This document shows, piece by piece, positions 1,699 to 64,000 of a stretch of DNA of 64,000 bases. The translations under genes and the position numbers were made by a program. This DNA is from Macrostomum lignano. Lineage: Eukaryota. The notes under the pieces are model-generated. The model saw nothing but the letters and a program-made list of their open reading frames with translations, was not told where the DNA came from and did no database searches. The stretch lies in the NCBI GenBank assembly GCA_002269645.1, contig NIVC01000634.1, forward strand, positions 1-64,000, in the 5' to 3' direction. The number at the start of each line of letters is the position of its first letter. Positions within the stretch are counted from its first letter, which is position 1.

Positions 1699-4600
1699 AT
1701 GTCAGCGGCGCCACCTCCATCTAGCGGCAGTGGCGGCGCGAAGCCTAAGCGATCGTCAATTGGTGCCGCCGCCTCGCCAGCGCCTGTGGATGCCAAACGG
1801 GCTCGGCTGGCTGCGCCTGTTGCGCCCAGTTTAGTGGAGTTGCGCCGGGCCTACCACGATCACGTAGCCGAGCTCAGCTACCTTCAGGCTGGCAACAATC
1901 TATTAGACTATCTGCTGTGGCGTCAGTCCTGCCCAAAATCTCTCTTAGCCGCTTTGAAAGCCGAAGCGCTCGACGAAGACGATCGAAGATGGATTGGCGA
2001 GATGGAGAAGTCCGGGCGGTGCGCGAATTGTTTCCTCGGTAAAAATTTTTTGCTTCTTTATCGACATGCTATGAGGGGTCTCAATGAGTCAGTCTTTTTA
2101 GGTTTCGGGTTTTTAGAAATTTGATGATAGATTTTTTGAACTGCATTTCCAACAGAAAGCATACCGAAACTGTAAAGAAACACGATGGGAAATTATGTAT
2201 ATAAGTATGCCATCAGCCAGTTTCACGGCAGCTCCTAAAACCCCGGTTCCATTTCACCAGGCCAGCCACGGTGCCGCAGGAATGCGAGCAGGCGGCGACA
2301 ACAGGCAATCCTATTGTGAACTACCTGCAGCTGCCGAGGCGCAGCTCGCCGCCTTCTCAACAGCAGCGTCAGCTGAGGCGAACTTCGTCTCAGCAGTCCA
2401 GCCAGGCCTCTCCGCAGCCGTCTCTGGCGTCCCAGACTTCTTCATCTCCGACAAAACAGGAAAAAGAAGCAGAAATTGTTGACCAGGCGAAGCACGAGGC
2501 TCAGGTGATGCAGAAGGTGGCCGAGCTCAAAGCGGCCGGTCTTTGGTCCAGCAAGCGGCTGCCGAAATGCCTGGAGCCGCCCAGGCCCAAGTCGCACTGG
2601 GACTATTTGCTAGAAGAGATGCAATGGCTGGCCACGGATTTTATGCAAGAGAGAAAGTTTCGTCGCGTCTTTTCTCGCAAGGTAAGCATTAGGTTGAGAT
2701 ACTTTGATAAATATGAACTTTACTGCTTTCATTCTCGTGATTGACAAATCATTCCCAGATGTGCCTGATGGTTCAGCGACATTTCCGCGAAAAAGAGGAC
2801 AGAGAGCGGCGCCAGGAGAAGGAAGAATTTCATAATTTAAAGCGCATCGCCTCTCAGTGCGCCAGGATGGTGCGCGAGTGGTGGCTGGGAATTCAAAAGG
2901 TGAGGCAGCTCTGCGGCTAAAATGGTATACTCATACTCAAGTGAACTCATCGCGAGCTGCCGATTTATTGCGCGAACAGATTATTTCCTTAAAATCTGGA
3001 CCGTTAAGCAGCTCGCTACATTAGCACTTATTCTTTTTCACTGACACAGAAATTCGCTCTACCCGATGCGTCTGTGTTATAAATTAGAATTACATTGCTT
3101 CTATCGGCGCAAACTGTTTTAATAATGCCTATTTTTAACGAGAGAGATTGAATTAATCGCCAAACTTGGCTACCCGCAGTTCGTGGAGTTCAAGCACAGC
3201 AACAGGCTAGAGGAGAAGCGACGAAAAGCTCTCGACCTGCATTTAAACTTCATCGTTGACCAGACTGAAAAGTACTCGGAGTGGCTTGTCGAAGGCCTCA
3301 ACGCCGGTGGCGCCAGCAGTAGTGGAGGCGCCGGGTCCGTCGCCGGCAGAGATGACGAAGAATTCGTGCCGGCCGCATCGGATCTGGACGCCGACATGGA
3401 TGACGAGGAGACCATAGCCAAGGCCGAGGCTGAGGACTTGGCCGATACACAGGATGGCGACGACGAAATTGCCGCCCTGCAACGCGACATGGACCAGCCA
3501 ATGGAAGAGCTTCTGCGCAGCCTGCCGCCTGAGATTCTAGAGAAGCCGGCCAGTCTTCCGGGCTCGGAGGCTGGCACTGATGATGATAAAGACAAAGGCG
3601 ACACCGGCGACGAAGACAGCGAGTTTCGCATGGACTCCGACGACGCCGAGGCCGAGGATGTCGAAGATACAATCGCCGAAGAGGAGGCGGCTGTGGGCGG
3701 CAGCGGCGATGCCGGCGTCGAGGTCGACCAGCTGGCGGAGGAGGCCGAGCTGCCGCTTGAAGAGCTACTGAAACGCTATCGCGGCGCGTTCGAAGGAGGC
3801 CACAGCGAAGCCGACGAGGCGGCGTCTGTGGCAGAAAAAAGCGGCGGCGAAGACGGTACCGCCTCCGGCAAGTCTGGCGACGCCTCGGACAACACAGACG
3901 ACGAAGCCTCTGCAGGCGCCAAATCGGCCATTGCTGAGCTGGCCGAGATGGATGCCACTTCCGATACCGGCGACGCCAATGGCGAGGACGTCGAGGCGCA
4001 AAGGCGATGTCGGGAGAAGCTGGATGAAGGCTATCGGGAGCTGGCGGCTGAGGCGCTGTCCGCGCTGCCGAAGGGATTCACACTGAACTCCACTAAGATT
4101 AGCGTGCCTATTCCGCACCTGCTGCGCGGTGGCAGCCTTCGCGAGTACCAGATTGTTGGCCTCGATTGGCTGGCCACACTCTACGATAAGCGGCTTAATG
4201 GCATTCTTGCTGACGAAATGGGTCTTGGCAAAACCATCCAGACCATCGCCCTGCTGGCGCATCTGGCCTGCGACCGCGGTGTCTGGGGGCCGCATCTCAT
4301 TGTTGTGCCAACGAGCGTCATGCTCAACTGGGAGATGGAGTTCAAGAAGTGGTGCCCCGGCTTTAAGATTCTTACCTATTTCGGCTCTCTAAAAGAGCGC
4401 AAGGAGAAGCGCAAAGGCTGGACAAAGACGAACGCATTCCACGTGTGCATCACCTCTTACAAGTTAGCCATTCAGGATTCCCGCTGCTTCAAGCTCAAGA
4501 AATGGAAGTACCTGATTCTTGACGAGGCGCAGAACATCAAGAACTTCAAGTCGCAGCGCTGGCAGACGCTTCTGACATTCAACAGTCAGAGGCGCCTTCT

Positions 4601-7600
4601 ATTAACTGGAACGCCGTTGCAAAACTCCCTCATGGAGCTGTGGTCGCTAATGCATTTTCTAATGCCTCAAGTCTTTCAGTCTCACAGAGAGTTTCGCGAA
4701 TGGTTTGCCAACCCCCTCACCGGCATGGTGGAGGGCACACAGGAGTACAGCGACCAGCTGGTACGGCGACTTCACAAGGTGAGATAATTGGCTTGCTTGC
4801 ACTTTTTTCTAGCTAAGTATTACTGATCTGAAAACTATATAGGGTTATCATTTTACTTTCAAAACAGGTGTTGAGGCCTTTCCTTCTTCGGCGTTTGAAA
4901 AAGGACGTCGAGAAGCAGATGCCAAAGAAATACGAACACGTCGTCATGTGCCGACTGTCCAAGCGTCAGCGGTACCTCTACGACGACTTCATGTCGCGTG
5001 CGTCAACCAAGGAGACTCTGGCTAGCGGCCATTTCATGAGCGTCATCAATGTGCTAATGCAGCTGCGCAAGGTGTGCAACCACCCCAATCTGTTCGAGGA
5101 GCGGCCCACTGTGTCGCCGCTGCGTGTTGACCCAATTCGCATTGACGTGCCCGGCGATGTTCTCCGACTGCGAGACTACGATCCTATGCGCCAAGTTCTG
5201 CTGGAGACTCTGTGGCCAAACATGTGCGAGATGGAGCGCGACCTGCCCAGCTTCGTTGCCAGCCGGGTGGAACAGCTTCGACCGAAGCGTCCGCTAATTC
5301 AAGAGCTCGCAGACGATGCCGCACAGGATGCCGCAATTGGCAGTTCAAACGGCTCCTTCCCGGAGTCTGTGTTTAATTTTCGCGGCTTACCAGTGTCTCG
5401 CAAACCGTTTATCTCGCGAGCCACCCTCAAGGAGTCTAAGCTGGAATTGGCAAAGACAGCAGCACTGCCACCAGGTTTGTAAAGAAGTCAATTTTGCAAC
5501 AATCCTTATTGGTTTTCTTCCTTTTTACTTAATAAAAATGATCATCATCCACTTTAAATAAAGAATATTTCACAAACAAATATTTATATAGATTAGACAT
5601 TTATTATCGGTGGATAAGAATCCGTACTTTGCAAAAATCGCATATTATGTTTTTATTATAAAACCCGGCCTCCGAGGCTCCGACAGTCTCGATCCCGAAC
5701 AGATTCCTTCCTTAGGGTTGCTTTCATAAGACCGAAATTTCATAAAGCCGAGAGACACCTGCCTACCTACACAAGACCGAAATTTCACAATGCCGAAACC
5801 ACTGCATGGTCCTTCATAATCATAAGACCTAAATTTCACATCGTATAGAAAACTCAATATGCAAACCCTTCACAAGACCGAAACTTCATATGTCTGAACT
5901 TTTACATCATAGAAAAATTAATACAACAAGGACCATGCAGAATTTTCGGCGTTGTGAAATTTCGGTCTTTTGAAGGGCCTTGCATATTGAGTTTTCTACA
6001 GTGTGAAATGAGATGTTTCGGCGTTGTGAAATGTCGGTCTTATGAGGCTCCCCCCTTCCTTAGCCCATGCATTCATTAAGCAAATACACAGTCACGAACC
6101 CCTTTGTCGTGTCTGCCTCTTGTATCTTCTTTGCTTCTTTGCTTTTGACTTGAGGGGTCCCCGCGGCGCATTAAATGACTGTCTCTCCTCCCCACTGAGT
6201 GCACAACTTGTATGTACGCAAAAACACGCTGGGCCGGGGTTTGACTTCAAAAATCGATATTCCTTCTAGAATTTTCTACGCACCACCCACCCTCCCGTAC
6301 CCTATTCCAGCCCTGTGCTACTTGCCTTCTCATTGGCTGACACGCCTCTGTCACGCCCCTCTGGCGTGCACACCGCACAACCCCCCATGGTCCCTAGGTC
6401 TTGCCCTATATGAAATCACCGACTCGAAGCCCCACTGGCCCCTTCCCCTTTGCTTATCACACGAATACAGTGGGATTGTTCCAACTTCCAAATCCAAAGC
6501 ATTTATTTCATGCCGTATAGTTTGACTACTGACTGAAGCAGATTTCAGCGCTGAATAAAGACTTTGTCTTCTCAAGTTTTCTCCTTCTCAAATGAATACC
6601 TGAATAAAAATGGTTAAACGAAATTTCTGTCATCGACATCAATCCATGGCGCCAGTGGTAAGTGAAGTCCAACCACTTTTCGTGTTAAATTCCAATCTAG
6701 AAGCACAATTCGAATCTAGACCGAAATTGAAAGAAATATTGACTGCTACAGTTTACCCAGTATAAATTTTAAGACCTCCGTGCAGTCACACCCTTGTTAC
6801 TGAACAATTAAGTTATTGTTCTCAGTAATCGTTCTGTCGCGATTTGGCCGCACTCTGGTGTTTAGCAGTCAAAGATGATCCGGCTAAAAGTGAGAAACGT
6901 CTCTAGCAGATTTTACGAGTCGTTTTCGAACATTTAGCGACAGTTTTTCACACTAACGTTTTCTATGCTTAACATGACATGATTACTTGTTTCTCTTGGC
7001 TGACTAAGCTATATGCTATGCAGATTCCGAGATTTTATGATATTTTAATAGCATCCAGGAACAAACCATTTGATCTTGTTCTCTACTAAAGGTTTCCTCC
7101 CTCTCTCCTACTTCATTTGAAGGATCTCGGCCCCAGCCTGAGAAGGTTGACACCAGGCATCTATGCAAGAAGCTCGCCAGCAAGTATGCAATTGGTATGT
7201 AGACTTTTTCTTTTTTCTTATCAATTTTATTATAAAGCAAAACTAGAAACTTGGCCGTTTTCATTCGTGTGATTCCGACAATACGCGTATTCTCGGCATC
7301 GAATACGACAAATAGCAGCCAGTTATTTTACTGACTGTCTTTAATTAAACTGGCCTAACAGCAGCTGCTTTCATTATTTACGTGCTGTCGCCATTTTAAC
7401 CCGACTGTGCTGGCGGTGACAGCCCCGAGTAATGACACAATTATTGCAAATCCACCATCAGCAATAAATCTTTCTCATTGCTTTTGCCGCTCTTTCCGTT
7501 CTTCTCAACAGAAGCTCCCGTCGATCCCGACGCCCAGCTGCCAGACGGCATCCGGCAGATTCGGCAGCAGGCGCGCCACGATCGAGTCAGCTTGCTGGAC

Positions 7601-21104: not shown

Positions 21105-43461
<22,357 letters not shown>

Positions 43462-53634: not shown

Positions 53635-56298
53635 GCCTCTCCCCGGTTATGATTGCCGACGACTCCGAGCGGGCGCTGACCTCCGGCCTGCTCAGCGCGC
53701 TGGGAACCGAGGCGCGCCAGATCCCGCTGCGCCCGACCACGGCCGGCCTCACCCGTCGGGCCCGCCTGGCCAAGCCGACGGCGCCTCTGCCGCTTGAGGA
53801 AGACGGCGGCTCCGGCGGGGACGGCGGCCTGCAGCTGCCGCTGATCGACGACGCTCGCCGACAGAAGCGTCGGAAGCGGCCACCAGCTGGCGGCTCCAGT
53901 CCGGACCGGCTGGAAGCACTCGGCCCCCGGCGCCTCGGCCGAACAAGGCGAGTCGGCGACTCGACCTGCCACGGCCGCCGCATCCTGGCGTCGACGCCGC
54001 TCGGAGACGTCGCCGAAGCCGATGGCTGCCGATGTTGCCGATTGCGTCAACACGCGCTACGCGGTGCTGAACGGCCGCACCCGGACGGAGGCCAGCGATT
54101 TCGAGGCCTTCAGGCGGCGCTACGGCCGCGGCAGCGAATGGGGTCGCGTGGCGTGGGCGGCCCGCTGCATGGAGCAGTTCCTCACCGCCTACTCCGTGCC
54201 GATCGCCTTCGTCAACGGCGAGAAGCTGGCGGCCCTGGCTGAGCAGCTCGACTTGTCCGGCCGGCGGCCGACCGGAGCTCAGCTTCTCGACTGTCTCATC
54301 AACCGGTCGGACGTGGCGCGGCTGGTGTCGCAGCCCGGCCGGCGGTTCTCCGGCCCGGACGGCCGGTTCCGAGCCTGCGCGCTCATCCAGGCCCGCTGGC
54401 GCGGCTTCGCGCAGCGCCGCCGCTACCTGGAGCTGCGGCGCCGGCGCCAGGCGGCCGTTGTCATCGCCACGGCCTGGCTGCTGCAACTGCGCCGGAGGGT
54501 CGCCCGGGTGCGTCTCAGCGAAGCCCGGTCGCAGCACCTAGACGGCTACAGGCGCAGGCTGCGGCTGCTCGCCAAGAACTGGGCGGACTGGCAGCGCCAG
54601 CGCCGCGTCCTGGTGCACATCCCGTCGGCTGGGCTCTCGGAGCGGACGCGGAGTCGTCTCGGCGATGACGGCATCGACCAGCTGCAGGCCGGGCAGATGG
54701 CGCGGTTGTGCGACATCCGCGACCCAAATGTTGACGTCGTGCTGGTCTGCCCGCGGCCGGTGAGCCCGGAGGTGGCGCAGTACTTCAGCCGGCTGGCGGG
54801 CCTTCAGCCTGCCATCCGGTCGGGCCGCGCCGAGGACCAGGCGGACGCCAGCAGGAGGTTTCGCCTGGTGGTGCCGGAGGCGGTCGGTCAGTTCCGCGGG
54901 CTGCCGCTGTGCCTGTCCACCCTGCTCAACTACTCGCCGAAGGCGCTCCGCCAGATTCGCGAGGTGGTGGTGGGCCGGCGGGCCTTCATCGTGCCCGGGC
55001 TGGCCTGCGCCGACGACCTCGCCGTGGCCGACCAGCTGGACCTGCCGATCCTCTGCCCGGAGCCCGGCGCCCTACGGCTGTACAGCGGCAGCGCGGGAGT
55101 CGGAGAAATTCTTCGAGCTGCCGGGCTGCCGATGCCGCCGGGCGAAGCCGGGCTGGCGGCGTCGGTCGAATGTCTGGCTGACAGGCTGGCGGCGCTGGTC
55201 ACCTCCAACCTGGACGTCGGCCGGTGGCAGGTGACGCTGGAGGATTCGGTCGACGAAGCGGAGGACGCGGATCGAAGCCGGCGGGTGTTCGACACGGAGC
55301 GACTTCGCTGTCGCCAGTGGGCGCTGGAGGAGCGGCAGCGGCTTGGAGAGGCGTGGTCAACGTCTTGGAGTCAGGAGGGCGTCAAGCTGAAGGTGCTGGA
55401 GGAGCTTCACCAGTCCGACTCGGCAGGGCTGAGCGGCCAGTGCGGCCGGGAGTTCCTGGCCGAGTTCGCCGCTCGCGGAGGCTGCATTCGAGCGTGCGCG
55501 GACGGCAGGGCGGCTCGGGTCAGCGCCGACCTCTGCGTTGAGCCGAGCGGAGCTGTGCGGCTCGTCAGCTGCGCGGACGGCGGCGGCAGCGGCGGTCCGA
55601 GGTTCGTACCCCAGTCAGCGCTGCCACCGAGCCGCCTCTCCGAGCTCTGTGGCCGGCTCGGCTCGGCCTGCTTCGAACGACGACTCATCGGGCACGTCAG
55701 CGTCGAATTCGACGTGTTCCAGGAGGGCGGCAGCTCCGCGCCTGCCGTGCTGACAGCCGGGCTGCGGTTCGGCTACTCGGACACGGCCGCGATGGCGCAG
55801 CTGCTGCAGTTCGCCACCAACTCCAGCCTCGACCCGGTTGGCCACGAGCTCACGATGAGGCGGCGGCTTCCCGGCGGCGGCGGCGGAGGCAGCAGCAGCG
55901 GAGTTCGGCACCGACCGCGCACCGCCGCTGCTGCAGTCGGCTCCACCGGCAGTGGTCGTCAGCGTCGATTTGCCGCTCTGTCGGCCGGCCTGCGGCACTC
56001 CGGCCTGGCCGCCGTGGACTTCGGCGTCTTCTTCCAGCTGTGCAAAGCCCGTGGCGTCGGGTTCGACGTCGCGGACCTCACCGGCACCGTCTTCTGCCTG
56101 GCCGAATCGGCTCGGCGCGACCGCCTGTGCGTCCTGACGGTGTCGAACGGGTCGCATCGGGCGCGGGCGGAGTTCGCGCGGGTGCTGGCCGCCATCAACG
56201 AGGAGCTGGGCGCGGCGGAGTTGTCGAACTTCGCGGACTACCTGCCGCCGGAGGGCGAGAGAGTCGAGCGGCTGAAGGCGCGGGGCTCGGAGGCCTGA
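53635..56298 (+). CDS. iqch: IQCH-like (IQ motif-containing H) protein; 5' end uncertain, one frame break
   Basis: ORF 54022-56298 has the IQ motif LIQARWRGFAQRR and IQCH-typical blocks (VIATAWLL, RVLVHIPS, RLCDIRDPNVDVV, YSPKALRQI, DDLAVADQLDLPIL, FQLCKARGVGFD). IQCH-like upstream sequence (LSPVMIADDSERALTSGLL) is in another frame from 53635. Candidate small upstream exons: 52994-53103 (AELGLR) and 53205-53246. Confidence 0.85.
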
Positions 56299-60847: not shown

Positions 60848-63800
60848 ATGTTCCGCTCAGCCAAGAGGACCCTCGCAACCGGCGCTGGCCGATCCGGCTC
60901 CTACCTGCGCGACATTCTCGCGCGACCTTCGGGCGGCGTCGAGGCCCCCAGCGACGACGGAGCCAATGACGCCCTCCAGCCGATGCTGCAGGCGTACGAT
61001 GAGAAGAACTTCACTGAGTTGGGACGCCTCCTAGGTGAGGGCGCGAACCCGCACTTGCCTCTCCGGGACAACCGGACGCTGGTGCAGCTGGCCGCCTTCG
61101 ACGGCAACCTGCAGGCGCTGCGACTGTTCAAGGAGCAGGGCGTCGATTTGAACCGACGCGGACCGGACGGCAAAGTGCCGCTGCATCACGCGCTCAGTGC
61201 CAGGCGGCTGCTGACTGTCAAGAGGATGTGCCAGCTCGGCGCCAGTCCTGATGTGCCCTACTCGTCTGGCGCCTACCCGGTACACCGGTACAGCGGCCAG
61301 GCCAGCGTGGAGGTCATCCGATGCCTGCTCAGTAAGTTGTTGAGAAGACTACTTAAGGCTTTGAACCCCAACTAGTTCTTGATCGGGGAAGAAATTGCCT
61401 ACATTTAGGCTCGTAAATCACATTATAAGAACAATCAGAATAATTGGCAGAAAATTTTAGGCCTTTAAAGCTCTGGCTGAATTAAAATCACTGTCAGAGA
61501 TCACGGATGCAGAGTCACCATCATCAGCATAGGAAACGCTGCTGTGTGCGCTGCGTCCTTCTCCCACATTGGCAGCCTCTAAAACTGCCTACCTGCCAAA
61601 GGGTGCATCTACGAGCGTATTAATCTTGCGAATAGGACAGCAACATGTGCTGCAGCGGTGCGTTGATGAAAACTGCAATCCAGATGCCGCTGCACTCGCA
61701 ACATTGAAGGAACAGTTGGCCCAGGTTTTTCAAATACAGATCTATAGTGGCTGCTGCTAAGAGAAACAGGGGTCTGCAGCAAGCAGATAAGGTCACAAAG
61801 AGGGAGGAGCCTTGAACGTCATTCCTAACCCTAACATTTCTGTAGCAGCAAGCCAGGGCTGAAAAGCTTGGTGGCAGCCGTTGAAGCCGCGAATGCTTTC
61901 ATATAATGGGCAACCGAAATCGATTGGTCATATTTCAGCATGCAACGAAGCTCGAGTGTTGCCTTACTAGTGTAGAACAAATACTACTTCCAAGTCGCCA
62001 GTAGTAGCAAGAAATGCGTTTTGCAGTGAAATTTTGGCAGGTTCCTCTATTCTCTTGAAACTCATGCGCTCATTGAACTTTTTAAGTCTTCCAGGCTAAA
62101 GTATTGAATTCCAGCCAATGGCTTGGAAGCTGGTTTGGCTGGTTCCCATACGAATCCCATCATCTACTGCTTCCAGGGGACTGTAAAGCCAGACTGGACG
62201 TGTACGACAGGCTCAACAACACTCCGCTGCACCGCGCCTGCCTCGAGGACTCGTTTCACCACGTGCTGGAGCTGATTGACTATTGCAGTGAGCAGATTCT
62301 CAACCACCGCGGCTACGAGGGCAAGACCGCCTTGCACGTGGCTGTGCTTAACCAAAACCGGCGAATCATTCGCCTGCTGCTCACCCGCGGCTCCTTCGTC
62401 GACGTGCCCGCCAGCAACGGCAAGACGGCCATCGACCTGATAATGGGCGCTAATAATGTTGTGCTCATGAGCGACTTGGCTCATTTCTACACCGACCAGA
62501 TGTCGGCGGCGGTGACCGCCACAAGCTTCAAGGAGTTGCTTGACGCGCCGCAATTCCTGCAGTACCTGGGCTTTCTGGACGCTGTGGACAACGAGTTCCA
62601 GGTGTGCAGCGTGCCGTACATTGACCTAGGCGAGGAGGAAGAGAAGCAGTTACTGAAGAAGGTAGTGAAGGATGAAAACATGGATCTCATCGAGTTTAAG
62701 GAGATTTTGATGAAGCTACTCCAGACCGAGGTGTTCCATGTGCTCTGCGACGAACAGAACGACTCCTTGCTGCGGAGAATGGCGGCCAACGTAGTCAGAT
62801 ACGTGCTGTTTCGTGAAGATGCAGTCATGTTAAAGAAGCTGGTTGCCTGCGGCCTTGTATGGAACCGTATCGAGGTCCTAATTGAGAACAAGCTCGAAGC
62901 GCTGTACCTGCATACCCCAGACCGCGGATTCGCTGGAATGCTGACTCACTTCTATCGGCACTTTGCCAGTGAACACAAAGTTCAGTGGGGACATCTGGCT
63001 AGGCACTACGGCCAGCGTTGCAGCGCCTTCGGAATGCAGGCCGACCGAGGCGGCCTGAACCAGGACGTTGCCTTCCTCCGCCACCCGATGCACACGCTGG
63101 TAATTTGGAGCATCCTGGCCGGCCGCAGCAAGCTCACGGAAATTCTACTACAGCGCGAGAGATTCGACGTTTTGCCGATGTCGCTATTTTGCGCGGCACT
63201 GCTCCGCACCTTCAAGGACAACCCGAGCGTCAACGTGGACCCCGACAGCCTGGAAGAAAAGGCGCTGGCTTGTGAGAAGTTTGCCGTGAATATTGCAGAG
63301 ACCGTGTTTGAGGTGGACACCTCCTATGATAAGTGCGTGACCACCGACTTCCTGCTGTACCCGCTACCCACCTACGGAAACGTTTCCTGTATGGACCTCG
63401 CCGCGAAGAACAGCTCTGCCCTGTTTCTGCAGAGCCCTCCATGCCAGATCGCTCTAGAGAAGAAATGGTACGGCACTCTGTATGATGCGAACGCCATCAT
63501 CCGCGAGATAATTATTTGGTTGGGCGTTATTCCCCTGAACCCAATCATACCGTGGTACCTGATGCGTCAGGAGCGAATCCTGAAGATTATGGACGAGCGG
63601 CACCGCAGCCCCACCAAAAAGAGCAGCTGCGATTCGGCTGAAAGTCAGGACTGCAGCTTCCTGCTGACCGACAGCCCCTCCGCGAAGGATGCCATTGTGG
63701 CAGAGACTGACCCAGACGAGTCGGTCGACGCCGACGGGGAAAATAGCAAAGGCGCCAATGAATCCGCCTCTAAAGAGGACAAGAAGAAGCAGGATAGTAG

Positions 63801-64000
63801 CGGCGAGCAGCAGCACCCAGCAGACGGTGTCAAAAAATCGCCTTCCACCGCGGGGGCCGGAGCGGTGGCGCGCCAGGAATGCTTCTTGTACCGATGGGCG
63901 CTGCATCTGTACGACTTTTACCATATCCCCGCAGTGAAGTTCCGCTACCACGCTACGTCGCACGTAATTATGGTGCTGCTCATGTCATACATCCTGCTCT
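60848..64000 (+). CDS. Ankyrin-repeat TRPM-like cation channel (5' part; continues beyond the window)
   Basis: Exon 60848-61331 (phase-1 donor A|GTAAGT) and exon 62177->64000 (open frame with no stop to the window end). About 6-7 ankyrin repeats (DGKVPLHHA, NNTPLHRA, EGKTALHVA), followed by TRPM-like LVWNRIEVLIEN..LEALY, HPMHTLVIWSILAGR, SCMDLAA...CQIALEKKWYG and YDFYHIPAVKF leading into the start of S1. Confidence 0.85.

Follow-up and report, generated by a model that had tools for sequence, protein, structure and literature searches.

What kind of TRP channel joins ankyrin repeats to a TRPM-type channel part, and how did such an N-terminus arise? The question is raised by a gene on the forward strand of a 64,000-nucleotide stretch of the free-living flatworm Macrostomum lignano (assembly GCA_002269645.1, contig NIVC01000634.1, positions 1 to 64,000; hereafter the window), which begins at position 60848 and runs beyond 64000. 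A sequence-only reading of the window had proposed that this gene represents an unrecognized TRP subfamily. Our analyses point instead to a channel subunit of the flatworm TRPM-like clade that includes TRPM_MCLZ, the meclonazepam-activated channel of schistosomes, derived from a flatworm TRPM whose SLOG domain was lost or replaced; we assign this reading a probability of about 0.8. The encoded protein adds a free-living member to a kind of channel that is already known and was recently described; it belongs to a lineage-specific expansion and does not constitute a new TRP subfamily.

The locus is a real, intact and well-conserved M. lignano gene for a TRPM-type ion channel. An ATG-initiated open reading frame (ORF) that starts at 60848 in the first frame of 60848-64000 forms exon 1, and the second, long exon lies in the third frame, which is open from 62086 to the window end downstream of an in-frame stop at 62083. 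The long exon is missing from the list of ORFs because ORFs running off the window were not listed. The splice junction reads ...VIRCLL-R-DCKARLDV, in agreement with the uninterrupted sequence SCLLRICKADVDV of the M. lignano homologue P0016, and the gene of this paralogue has an intron at the same site within ankyrin repeat 4, where it is ~70 bp long (tblastx of L001 against the window gave the same exon break). Both exons were also matched by P0016 and P0017 in tblastn searches. The full protein comprises ~1198 aa, with ~770 residues encoded up to 64000 and the remainder in the same exon past the window end; its C-terminal 429 residues were taken from the database protein P0001 (1036 aa, the product of the long exon) and not from the window DNA. 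It could be argued that an ankyrin gene was mis-joined to a 5'-truncated TRPM gene, or that the locus is a pseudogene, as gene models do at times turn out to be fused or split (e.g., P0023 and P0168). Such an artefact is exceedingly unlikely: a single exon of 1036 codons encodes ankyrin repeats 5-7, the MHR3/4 region, the transmembrane (TM) domain and the TRP part without interruption; the paralogue P0016 has its intron at the corresponding site within an ankyrin repeat; functional motifs are conserved; and the architecture is found again in three parasite genera and at least 8 paralogue groups of M. lignano.

The domain order consists of an N-terminal tail, 6 full and 1 partial ankyrin repeats, a helical MHR3/4 region, a disordered linker, a pre-S1 helix, S1-S6 with a pore loop, a TRPM-type TRP helix (LWQFERNDLIEEF..R..LPPP) and C-terminal helices. 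The ~6-7 ankyrin repeats of the sequence-only reading correspond to six full repeats and a partial capping repeat at residues ~44-262, delimited by eye; Pfam ankyrin families were matched in both exons, with repeat 4 split by the intron, and the sequence motifs quoted in that reading all lie exactly where it had placed them (Table 1). Modelling with AlphaFold2 (AF2) covers the long-exon product, in which the ankyrin helix pairs are H16-22/H26-33, H51-57/H61-69 and H84-91 (predicted local distance difference test score, pLDDT, 84-91); ankyrin repeats 1-4 were identified by Pfam and sequence. Further downstream, Pfam detected PF25508 (TRPM2-like, MHR region), with 38.9 bits against a cut-off of 27 at P0001 aa 254-416 and covering profile positions 98-254 only, as well as Ion_trans (47 bits, P0001 aa 606-863). 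The earlier claim that ankyrin repeats stand directly before a TRPM-type MHR3/4 region and TM domain in one exon is borne out by Pfam, hhalign and Foldseek. Homologues differ in the length and sequence of the linker between the MHR4-like domain and the membrane part.

No LSDAT/SLOG, TRP_2, TRPM_tetra or NUDIX match was found in the protein by Pfam even at E<=1. Of the profile scans suggested by the sequence-only reading, those for ankyrin repeats were positive, and those for TRPM_tetra and LSDAT/SLOG were negative. The SLOG domains of five flatworm TRPMs had no tblastn match anywhere in the window, and a hidden SLOG exon was sought in the intron and upstream but none was found. The region between the ankyrin repeats and MHR3 is ~120 aa long and, in the AF2 models, all-helical without beta strands. 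This linker region is not a SLOG domain: its length falls short of one, and its fold class differs. MHR3 is divergent in its first half. The proposed replacement of SLOG/MHR1/2 by ankyrin repeats agrees with these results, as neither an LSDAT match nor SLOG-coding DNA was detected in the window. Extension past 64000 by means of P0001 revealed S1-S6, the pore loop and the TRP helix, followed in the monomer model by C-terminal helices at 921-934, 939-946 and 951-978, and no Nudix/NUDT9H domain; a kinase domain is likewise absent from the protein. A candidate EF-hand in 'KDENMDLIEFKEIL' was rejected by eye, as its spacing did not fit a 12-residue loop, and Pfam had no match for it.

The channel part is of the TRPM type. 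Among the best 60 phmmer matches to PDB sequences, all were TRPM channels except NOMPC. The match to the Nematostella TRPM2 (nvTRPM2, 6co7; 1.1e-34, 123 bits) extended from aa 302 in the MHR4-like domain to aa 906, past S6 and in the TRP helix, and that to NOMPC (5vkq; 1.9e-25, 92 bits) was ~30 bits lower. The AF2 model of P0001, built from a 12-sequence family alignment (mean pLDDT 73.4, predicted template modelling score 0.69), contains an all-helical cytosolic N-terminus, a disordered segment at aa 477-566, six TM helices with a pore helix, and TRP and C-terminal helices. When this 1036-aa model was compared with the PDB by Foldseek, only TRPM structures were found in the top 50; no TRPC was found among these 50 or among the best 60 sequence matches. 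The separate model of the first 476 residues (pLDDT 78.5) had query-normalized TM-scores (TMq) of 0.38-0.41 to the N-terminal regions of TRPM2/3/7, but of 0.17-0.22 to TRPA1, NOMPC and ankyrins, with NOMPC at 0.22. In hhalign, the N-terminus of the family was aligned to flatworm TRPM N-termini with a probability of 99.8%, ankyrin repeats being paired with ankyrin repeats and the SLOG domain of the target being skipped. After the skip, LVWNRIEVLIE...LEALY (residues ~386-430) was placed on the end of MHR3 of P0046 (kW..FvkLFle..Le.LYt), followed by all of MHR4.

Residues characteristic of TRPM are also kept. In an alignment of 133 TM domains, the protein retained EE..(Q/E) in S2, WN..D in S3, LGPKLKM in the S4-S5 linker and LLNLIIALF in S6, and the TRP helix pattern W.F.R..LI.E(Y/F)..R..LPPP, with a TRP box of WQFER and then LPPP. 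The S2/S3 acidic-polar cluster is the Ca2+ site in TRPM2/4/5/8, and the TRP helix of TRPM channels follows the pattern W.FQRY.LI.EY..RP.LPPP; LPPP after the TRP helix and LGPKLKM in the S4-S5 linker are TRPM signatures. The protein shares with canonical TRPM (nvTRPM2 and human TRPM2/3/4/7/8) the MHR3/4 and pre-S1 regions, the S2/S3 Ca2+-site residues, S4-S5 LGPKL, S6, the TRP helix with LPPP and predicted C-terminal helices like those of the rib and pole. It differs from them in lacking SLOG/MHR1/2, NUDT9H and the kinase and in having bona fide ankyrin repeats (6 full, 1 partial) at its N-terminus.

The overall layout of ankyrin repeats, helical linker domain, TM domain and TRP helix is also that of TRPC and TRPN. 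TRPC has four ankyrin repeats and a linker helical domain with a TRP_2 domain and an EWKFAR TRP box, and TRPN (NOMPC) has ~29 ankyrin repeats. The protein might therefore be regarded as a divergent TRPC, TRPN or TRPA whose linker-helix domain merely resembles MHR4, since in TRPC and TRPN, too, a helical linker comes after the ankyrin repeats and both a CQ..L...W motif and a WKF.R TRP box are present, and NOMPC is among the PDB matches. We regard this as most improbable, as Pfam identified PF25508 and not TRP_2, the sequence and structure matches described above favoured TRPM, with NOMPC 30 bits lower and TRPC missing, and the two signature motifs are those of TRPM. In both sequence and fold, the linker and TM regions are much closer to TRPM than to TRPC or TRPN, and the number of repeats is far from the ~29 of TRPN. 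Pfam, the PDB sequence search, profile-profile alignment and AF2 with Foldseek all assign what follows the ankyrin repeats, the TM domain included, to TRPM and not to TRPC, TRPN or TRPA, in line with the sequence-only reading. TRPS (soromelastatin) channels have SLOG, usually a Nudix domain, no ankyrin repeats and a distinct TRP domain, whereas the protein studied here has ankyrin repeats and neither SLOG nor Nudix.

This combination of domains has been described before, in publications of 2023 to 2026. Smp_333650 (TRPM_MCLZ) forms a functional cation channel that meclonazepam activates; its gene has three exons, its N-terminus contains "multiple ankyrin-like repeats," and it was formerly called TRPM7-like (PMC10788528, Park et al.). 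It "lacks the NH2-terminal MHR1/2 or SLOG domain," in the place of which ankyrin-repeat-like modules are found (PMC11731825). The label "TRPM-like" has been suggested for it, it was placed "next to," not inside, the other flatworm TRPMs, and its exon 3 is duplicated (3a/3b) in Clonorchis, Opisthorchis and Paragonimus (PMC12861061). In word searches of the texts of the TRPM_MCLZ papers, neither Macrostomum nor planarians nor free-living species were encountered. The M. lignano protein resembles TRPM_MCLZ (Schistosoma mansoni Smp_333650 and its orthologues in trematodes and cestodes) in having N-terminal ankyrin repeats in place of SLOG/MHR1/2, an MHR4-like region, TRPM-type S1-S6 and TRP helix, a short C-terminus without NUDT9H, a gene of few exons and a flatworm origin. 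Because an architecture of ankyrin repeats with MHR3/4 was already catalogued for this named family, the proposal of an unrecognized TRP subfamily falls. The differences are that TRPM_MCLZ is known from parasitic flatworms and the gene studied here comes from a free-living one, that the protein is only 21-24% identical to the parasite proteins, and that its pore motif is VGDY as opposed to the F(E/D)(V/I)S type of the parasite proteins.

Relatives were collected by an exhaustive profile search, in which 1.84 billion representatives were read and 2451 matches were obtained. A word-indexed search with the ankyrin-containing query had been flooded by generic ankyrin proteins and missed even a 46%-identical paralogue (Mlig030565); without the ankyrin part, such a search found two M. 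lignano paralogues only, and nothing was gained from another search, made with a family profile of 6 sequences. According to Pfam, ankyrin repeats, PF25508 and Ion_trans occur together without LSDAT in seven other M. lignano clusters (P0016, P0017, P0018, P0019, P0021, P0022, and P0024), and the same SLOG-less architecture is found in Opisthorchis viverrini/felineus (P0023), Dicrocoelium dendriticum (P0029), Schistocephalus solidus (P0027) and some further assemblies. Together with the gene under study, P0016-P0022 and P0024/P0174 make up at least 8 paralogue groups of ankyrin-bearing, SLOG-less channels in M. lignano. Most of these groups are represented by 2-3 copies that are nearly identical, which fits the duplicated genome. 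Among the further assemblies, an 11-kb metagenome contig (L002; ENA ERZ8811445 NODE_2627), probably flatworm DNA in an environmental or host sample, contains a member of the family as a 458-aa ankyrin ORF directly upstream of a 755-aa channel ORF.

In a neighbour-joining tree (133 sequences, 310 columns, 200 bootstraps), the sequences with ankyrin repeats but without SLOG formed one clade with 81% bootstrap support, a value that ranged over 73-86% when other distance corrections were applied. Every named member of the clade is from a flatworm (M. lignano, trematodes and a cestode). The clade comprises two subclades, one of parasite proteins (82%) and one of Macrostomum proteins (100%), and in the latter the protein groups with P0016, P0017, and P0020 at 94%. 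The next group out (58-73%) consists of SLOG-bearing TRPMs, of which all eight that could be named are from flatworms (Schistosoma, Clonorchis, and M. lignano), and the remoter clades contain mollusc, annelid, echinoderm, hemichordate and vertebrate TRPMs. The parasite subclade is very probably the TRPM_MCLZ orthologue group, because P0023 has tandem MHR4 and TM copies and because the Schistocephalus member is named TRPM7 in UniRef, which fits the earlier label "TRPM7-like" for TRPM_MCLZ (PMC10788528). The two copies in P0023 (O. viverrini KER32702.1, 1906 aa) span aa 414-1004 and 1145-1690 and evidently reflect read-through of the alternative exons 3a and 3b of TRPM_MCLZ into a single protein. 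The existence of two separate subclades, the promiscuity of ankyrin repeats as modules and the lack of a specific signal in their similarity would be compatible with an independent gain of the repeats in the Macrostomum subclade, the architecture being convergent with that of the parasite TRPM_MCLZ. Such convergence is very unlikely, given that the subclades are sisters at 73-86%, that SLOG is absent from both, and that ankyrin repeats are joined to the MHR4-like region in the same order in both.

Several points weigh against the proposed membership in, and derivation of, this flatworm clade and should be noted. The link to TRPM_MCLZ is indirect, as it is drawn from architecture, taxa, exon duplication and approximate residue numbering, and Smp_333650 was compared by its description only. 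The protein falls in a Macrostomum-only subclade that is sister to the parasite subclade, and it is a co-family paralogue of the parasite proteins rather than a demonstrated orthologue. The tree is unrooted and without a TRPC/TRPN/TRPS outgroup, with <25% support at its deep nodes. TRPM_tetra was not detected by Pfam, and the ankyrin region showed no specific kinship with that of the flatworm TRPMs that have both ankyrin repeats and SLOG (P0046 and P0050) beyond that with generic ankyrin proteins.

These latter TRPMs (P0046, M. lignano Mlig003066; P0050, Clonorchis/Opisthorchis "TRPM2") resemble the clade in having N-terminal ankyrin repeats and a full PF25508 and are its neighbours in the TM tree, but they keep SLOG between the ankyrin repeats and MHR3 and are ~1700-1790 aa long. 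P0046 has three copies of 1781-1786 aa, and P0050/P0195 occur in Clonorchis sinensis and Opisthorchis viverrini, so that this architecture is kept between Macrostomorpha and Trematoda. As possible intermediates, P0046 and P0050 suggest a route in which ankyrin repeats would have been gained before SLOG was lost. Loss of SLOG from such an ancestor is offered as a hypothesis only, because the ankyrin regions carry only generic similarity.

The sequence-only reading had offered two origins, a domain swap and a retained intermediate between TRPC/TRPN and TRPM/TRPS; the former fits the results better, and the latter is disfavoured. On the retained-intermediate scenario, the lineage split off before the ancestor of TRPM and TRPS gained SLOG and kept a TRPC/TRPN-like layout of ankyrin repeats and linker helices. 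Consistent with it are the lack of detectable N-terminal ankyrin repeats in canonical TRPM and TRPS, both of which were reported to be without them in a survey that sampled no Platyhelminthes (PMC7306681, Himmel et al., 2020), the distinctness of the clade (73-86%) and the placement of TRPM_MCLZ "next to" other flatworm TRPMs (PMC12861061), as well as the unrooted tree with its unsupported deep nodes. We nevertheless consider it unlikely. Despite the 1.84 billion representatives read, the named members are from flatworms only, and the clade joins SLOG-bearing TRPMs of flatworms at 58-73%. The TRP helix, the S2/S3 site and the S4-S5 linker are TRPM-like throughout, and a lineage that survives in flatworms alone would have had to be lost from every other phylum. 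In its strongest form, in which the SLOG-less clade would be the sole survivor of a pre-SLOG TRPM/TRPS stem lineage, with the ancestral ankyrin and linker-helix N-terminus common to TRPC/TRPN and not a flatworm invention, the idea is quite unlikely; if true, it would directly show the assembly of the melastatin N-terminus. Domain replacement within a flatworm TRPM lineage appears to be the better reading, because only flatworms contribute named members, because the clade adjoins SLOG-bearing TRPMs of flatworms and because the channel core is TRPM-like throughout. A flatworm TRPM would have lost or replaced SLOG and come to carry N-terminal ankyrin repeats, and the family would then have expanded in M. 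lignano to at least 8 paralogue groups.

With regard to function, the protein is predicted to assemble as a tetrameric non-selective cation channel. The acidic residue in its pore motif, VGDY, which stands in the place of YGEL in nvTRPM2, makes permeability to Ca2+ probable. Since the S2/S3 acidic-polar cluster (EE..E and WN..D) and the S1-S4 cavity are kept, the channel is likely to be gated by intracellular Ca2+ and/or by small ligands in that cavity, and gating by ADP-ribose or nucleotides is not expected, because neither SLOG nor NUDT9H is present. The ankyrin solenoid presumably takes the peripheral lower-tier place of MHR1/2, in the outer cytosolic tier, where it may serve in regulation or partner binding. 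The S1-S4 cavity, which is the drug-binding site in the parasite relatives and the pocket through which (S)-meclonazepam activates TRPM_MCLZ, is retained. In S4, Tyr877 (RLL-Y-IST) probably occupies the position of H946 of the schistosome channel, judging from alignment, motif position and numbering. At this position of TRPM_MCLZ, His is found in the meclonazepam-sensitive schistosomes and Tyr or Phe in poorly sensitive species, and the Tyr of the M. lignano protein would correspond to the low-sensitivity state.

TRPM_MCLZ is a validated anthelmintic target, and the published work on it, as far as searched, has sampled parasitic flatworms only. What is new here, and it is modest, is the presence and the expansion to at least 8 paralogue groups of this channel family in a free-living, early-branching and genetically manipulable flatworm; therefore, the family predates parasitism. 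Macrostomum offers a tractable system in which to seek the native stimulus of these channels and to learn what their ankyrin domain does. The family is a natural experiment on the contribution of the SLOG/MHR1/2 tier to TRPM gating. It also qualifies the textbook statement that TRPMs lack ankyrin repeats. These results should be of moderate interest, mainly to specialists in flatworms and in TRP evolution.

Table 1. Positions in the window of the parts of the ankyrin-TRPM-like gene, of the motifs quoted in the sequence-only reading and of other features.
Feature	Positions	Strand	Description	Basis
Exon 1	60848..61331	+	ATG, ~43-aa N-terminal tail, ankyrin repeats 1-3 and first half of repeat 4; 161 codons + 1 base, phase 1	ORF and translation; Pfam Ank_2/Ank_4/Ank; tblastn with P0016 aa 148-291 and P0017 aa 122-228
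Intron	61332..62176	+	GTAAGT...CCAG, GT(61332)...AG(62176); 845 bp, stops in all frames	
Long exon, start	62177..62454	+	Second half of ankyrin repeat 4, repeats 5 and 6, partial capping repeat 7	Pfam Ank (P0001 aa 6-88)
Helical linker and MHR3-like region	62458..63048	+	Includes LVWNRIEVLIENKLEALY	AF2 secondary structure, hhalign
MHR4-like domain	62938..63606	+	HPMHTLVIWSILAGR, LFCAALLR, EKFAVNIAE, YGNVSCMDLAA...CQIALEKKWYG, then helix towards membrane	PF25508 positions 98-254
Acidic/serine-rich low-complexity linker	63607..63876	+	Predicted disordered, P0001 aa 477-566	AF2 pLDDT 27-32
Pre-S1 helix and start of S1	63883..64000	+	LYDFYHIPAVKFRYH; exon runs on for ~429 codons (S1-S6, pore, TRP helix, predicted rib and pole helices, stop)	AF2 helices
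Motif LVWNR..LEALY	62854-62907			
Motif HPMHTLVIWSILAGRSKL	63082-63135			
Motif LFCAALLR	63184-63207			
Motif EKFAVNIAE	63274-63300			
Motif YGNVSCMDLAA..EKKWYG	63373-63474			
Motif YDFYHIPAVKF	63910-63942			
S1 start	63961-63999			
SNF2-related helicase domain ORF	3183-4787	+		218 bits
G-rich minisatellites	22977-24501, 25045-25313, 25507-26178		30-bp unit x 51 copies (95% matches); 63-bp unit x 4.3; 17/18-bp units x 16-36	
Polycystin-1/PKDREJ-like gene	~28884-41216	+	Large, multi-exon; PKD domain and REJ 28884-32276, REJ 33029-34054, Polycystin_dom and PKD_channel 39900-41216	
IQCH-like ATP-grasp gene (L003)	54022-56298	+	Single exon, 758 aa	PF24923, 142 bits

Elsewhere in the window, the IQCH-like ATP-grasp gene, whose protein has an exact match at identical coordinates on contig NIVC01000634.1, is the neighbour of the ankyrin-TRPM-like gene, and the polycystin-1/PKDREJ-like gene, ~20 kb upstream of it, is a second gene related to the TRP superfamily. 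The ORF with the SNF2-related helicase domain probably represents an exon from a gene for a chromatin remodeller. The G-rich minisatellites account for the strong GC skew at 23-26 kb.

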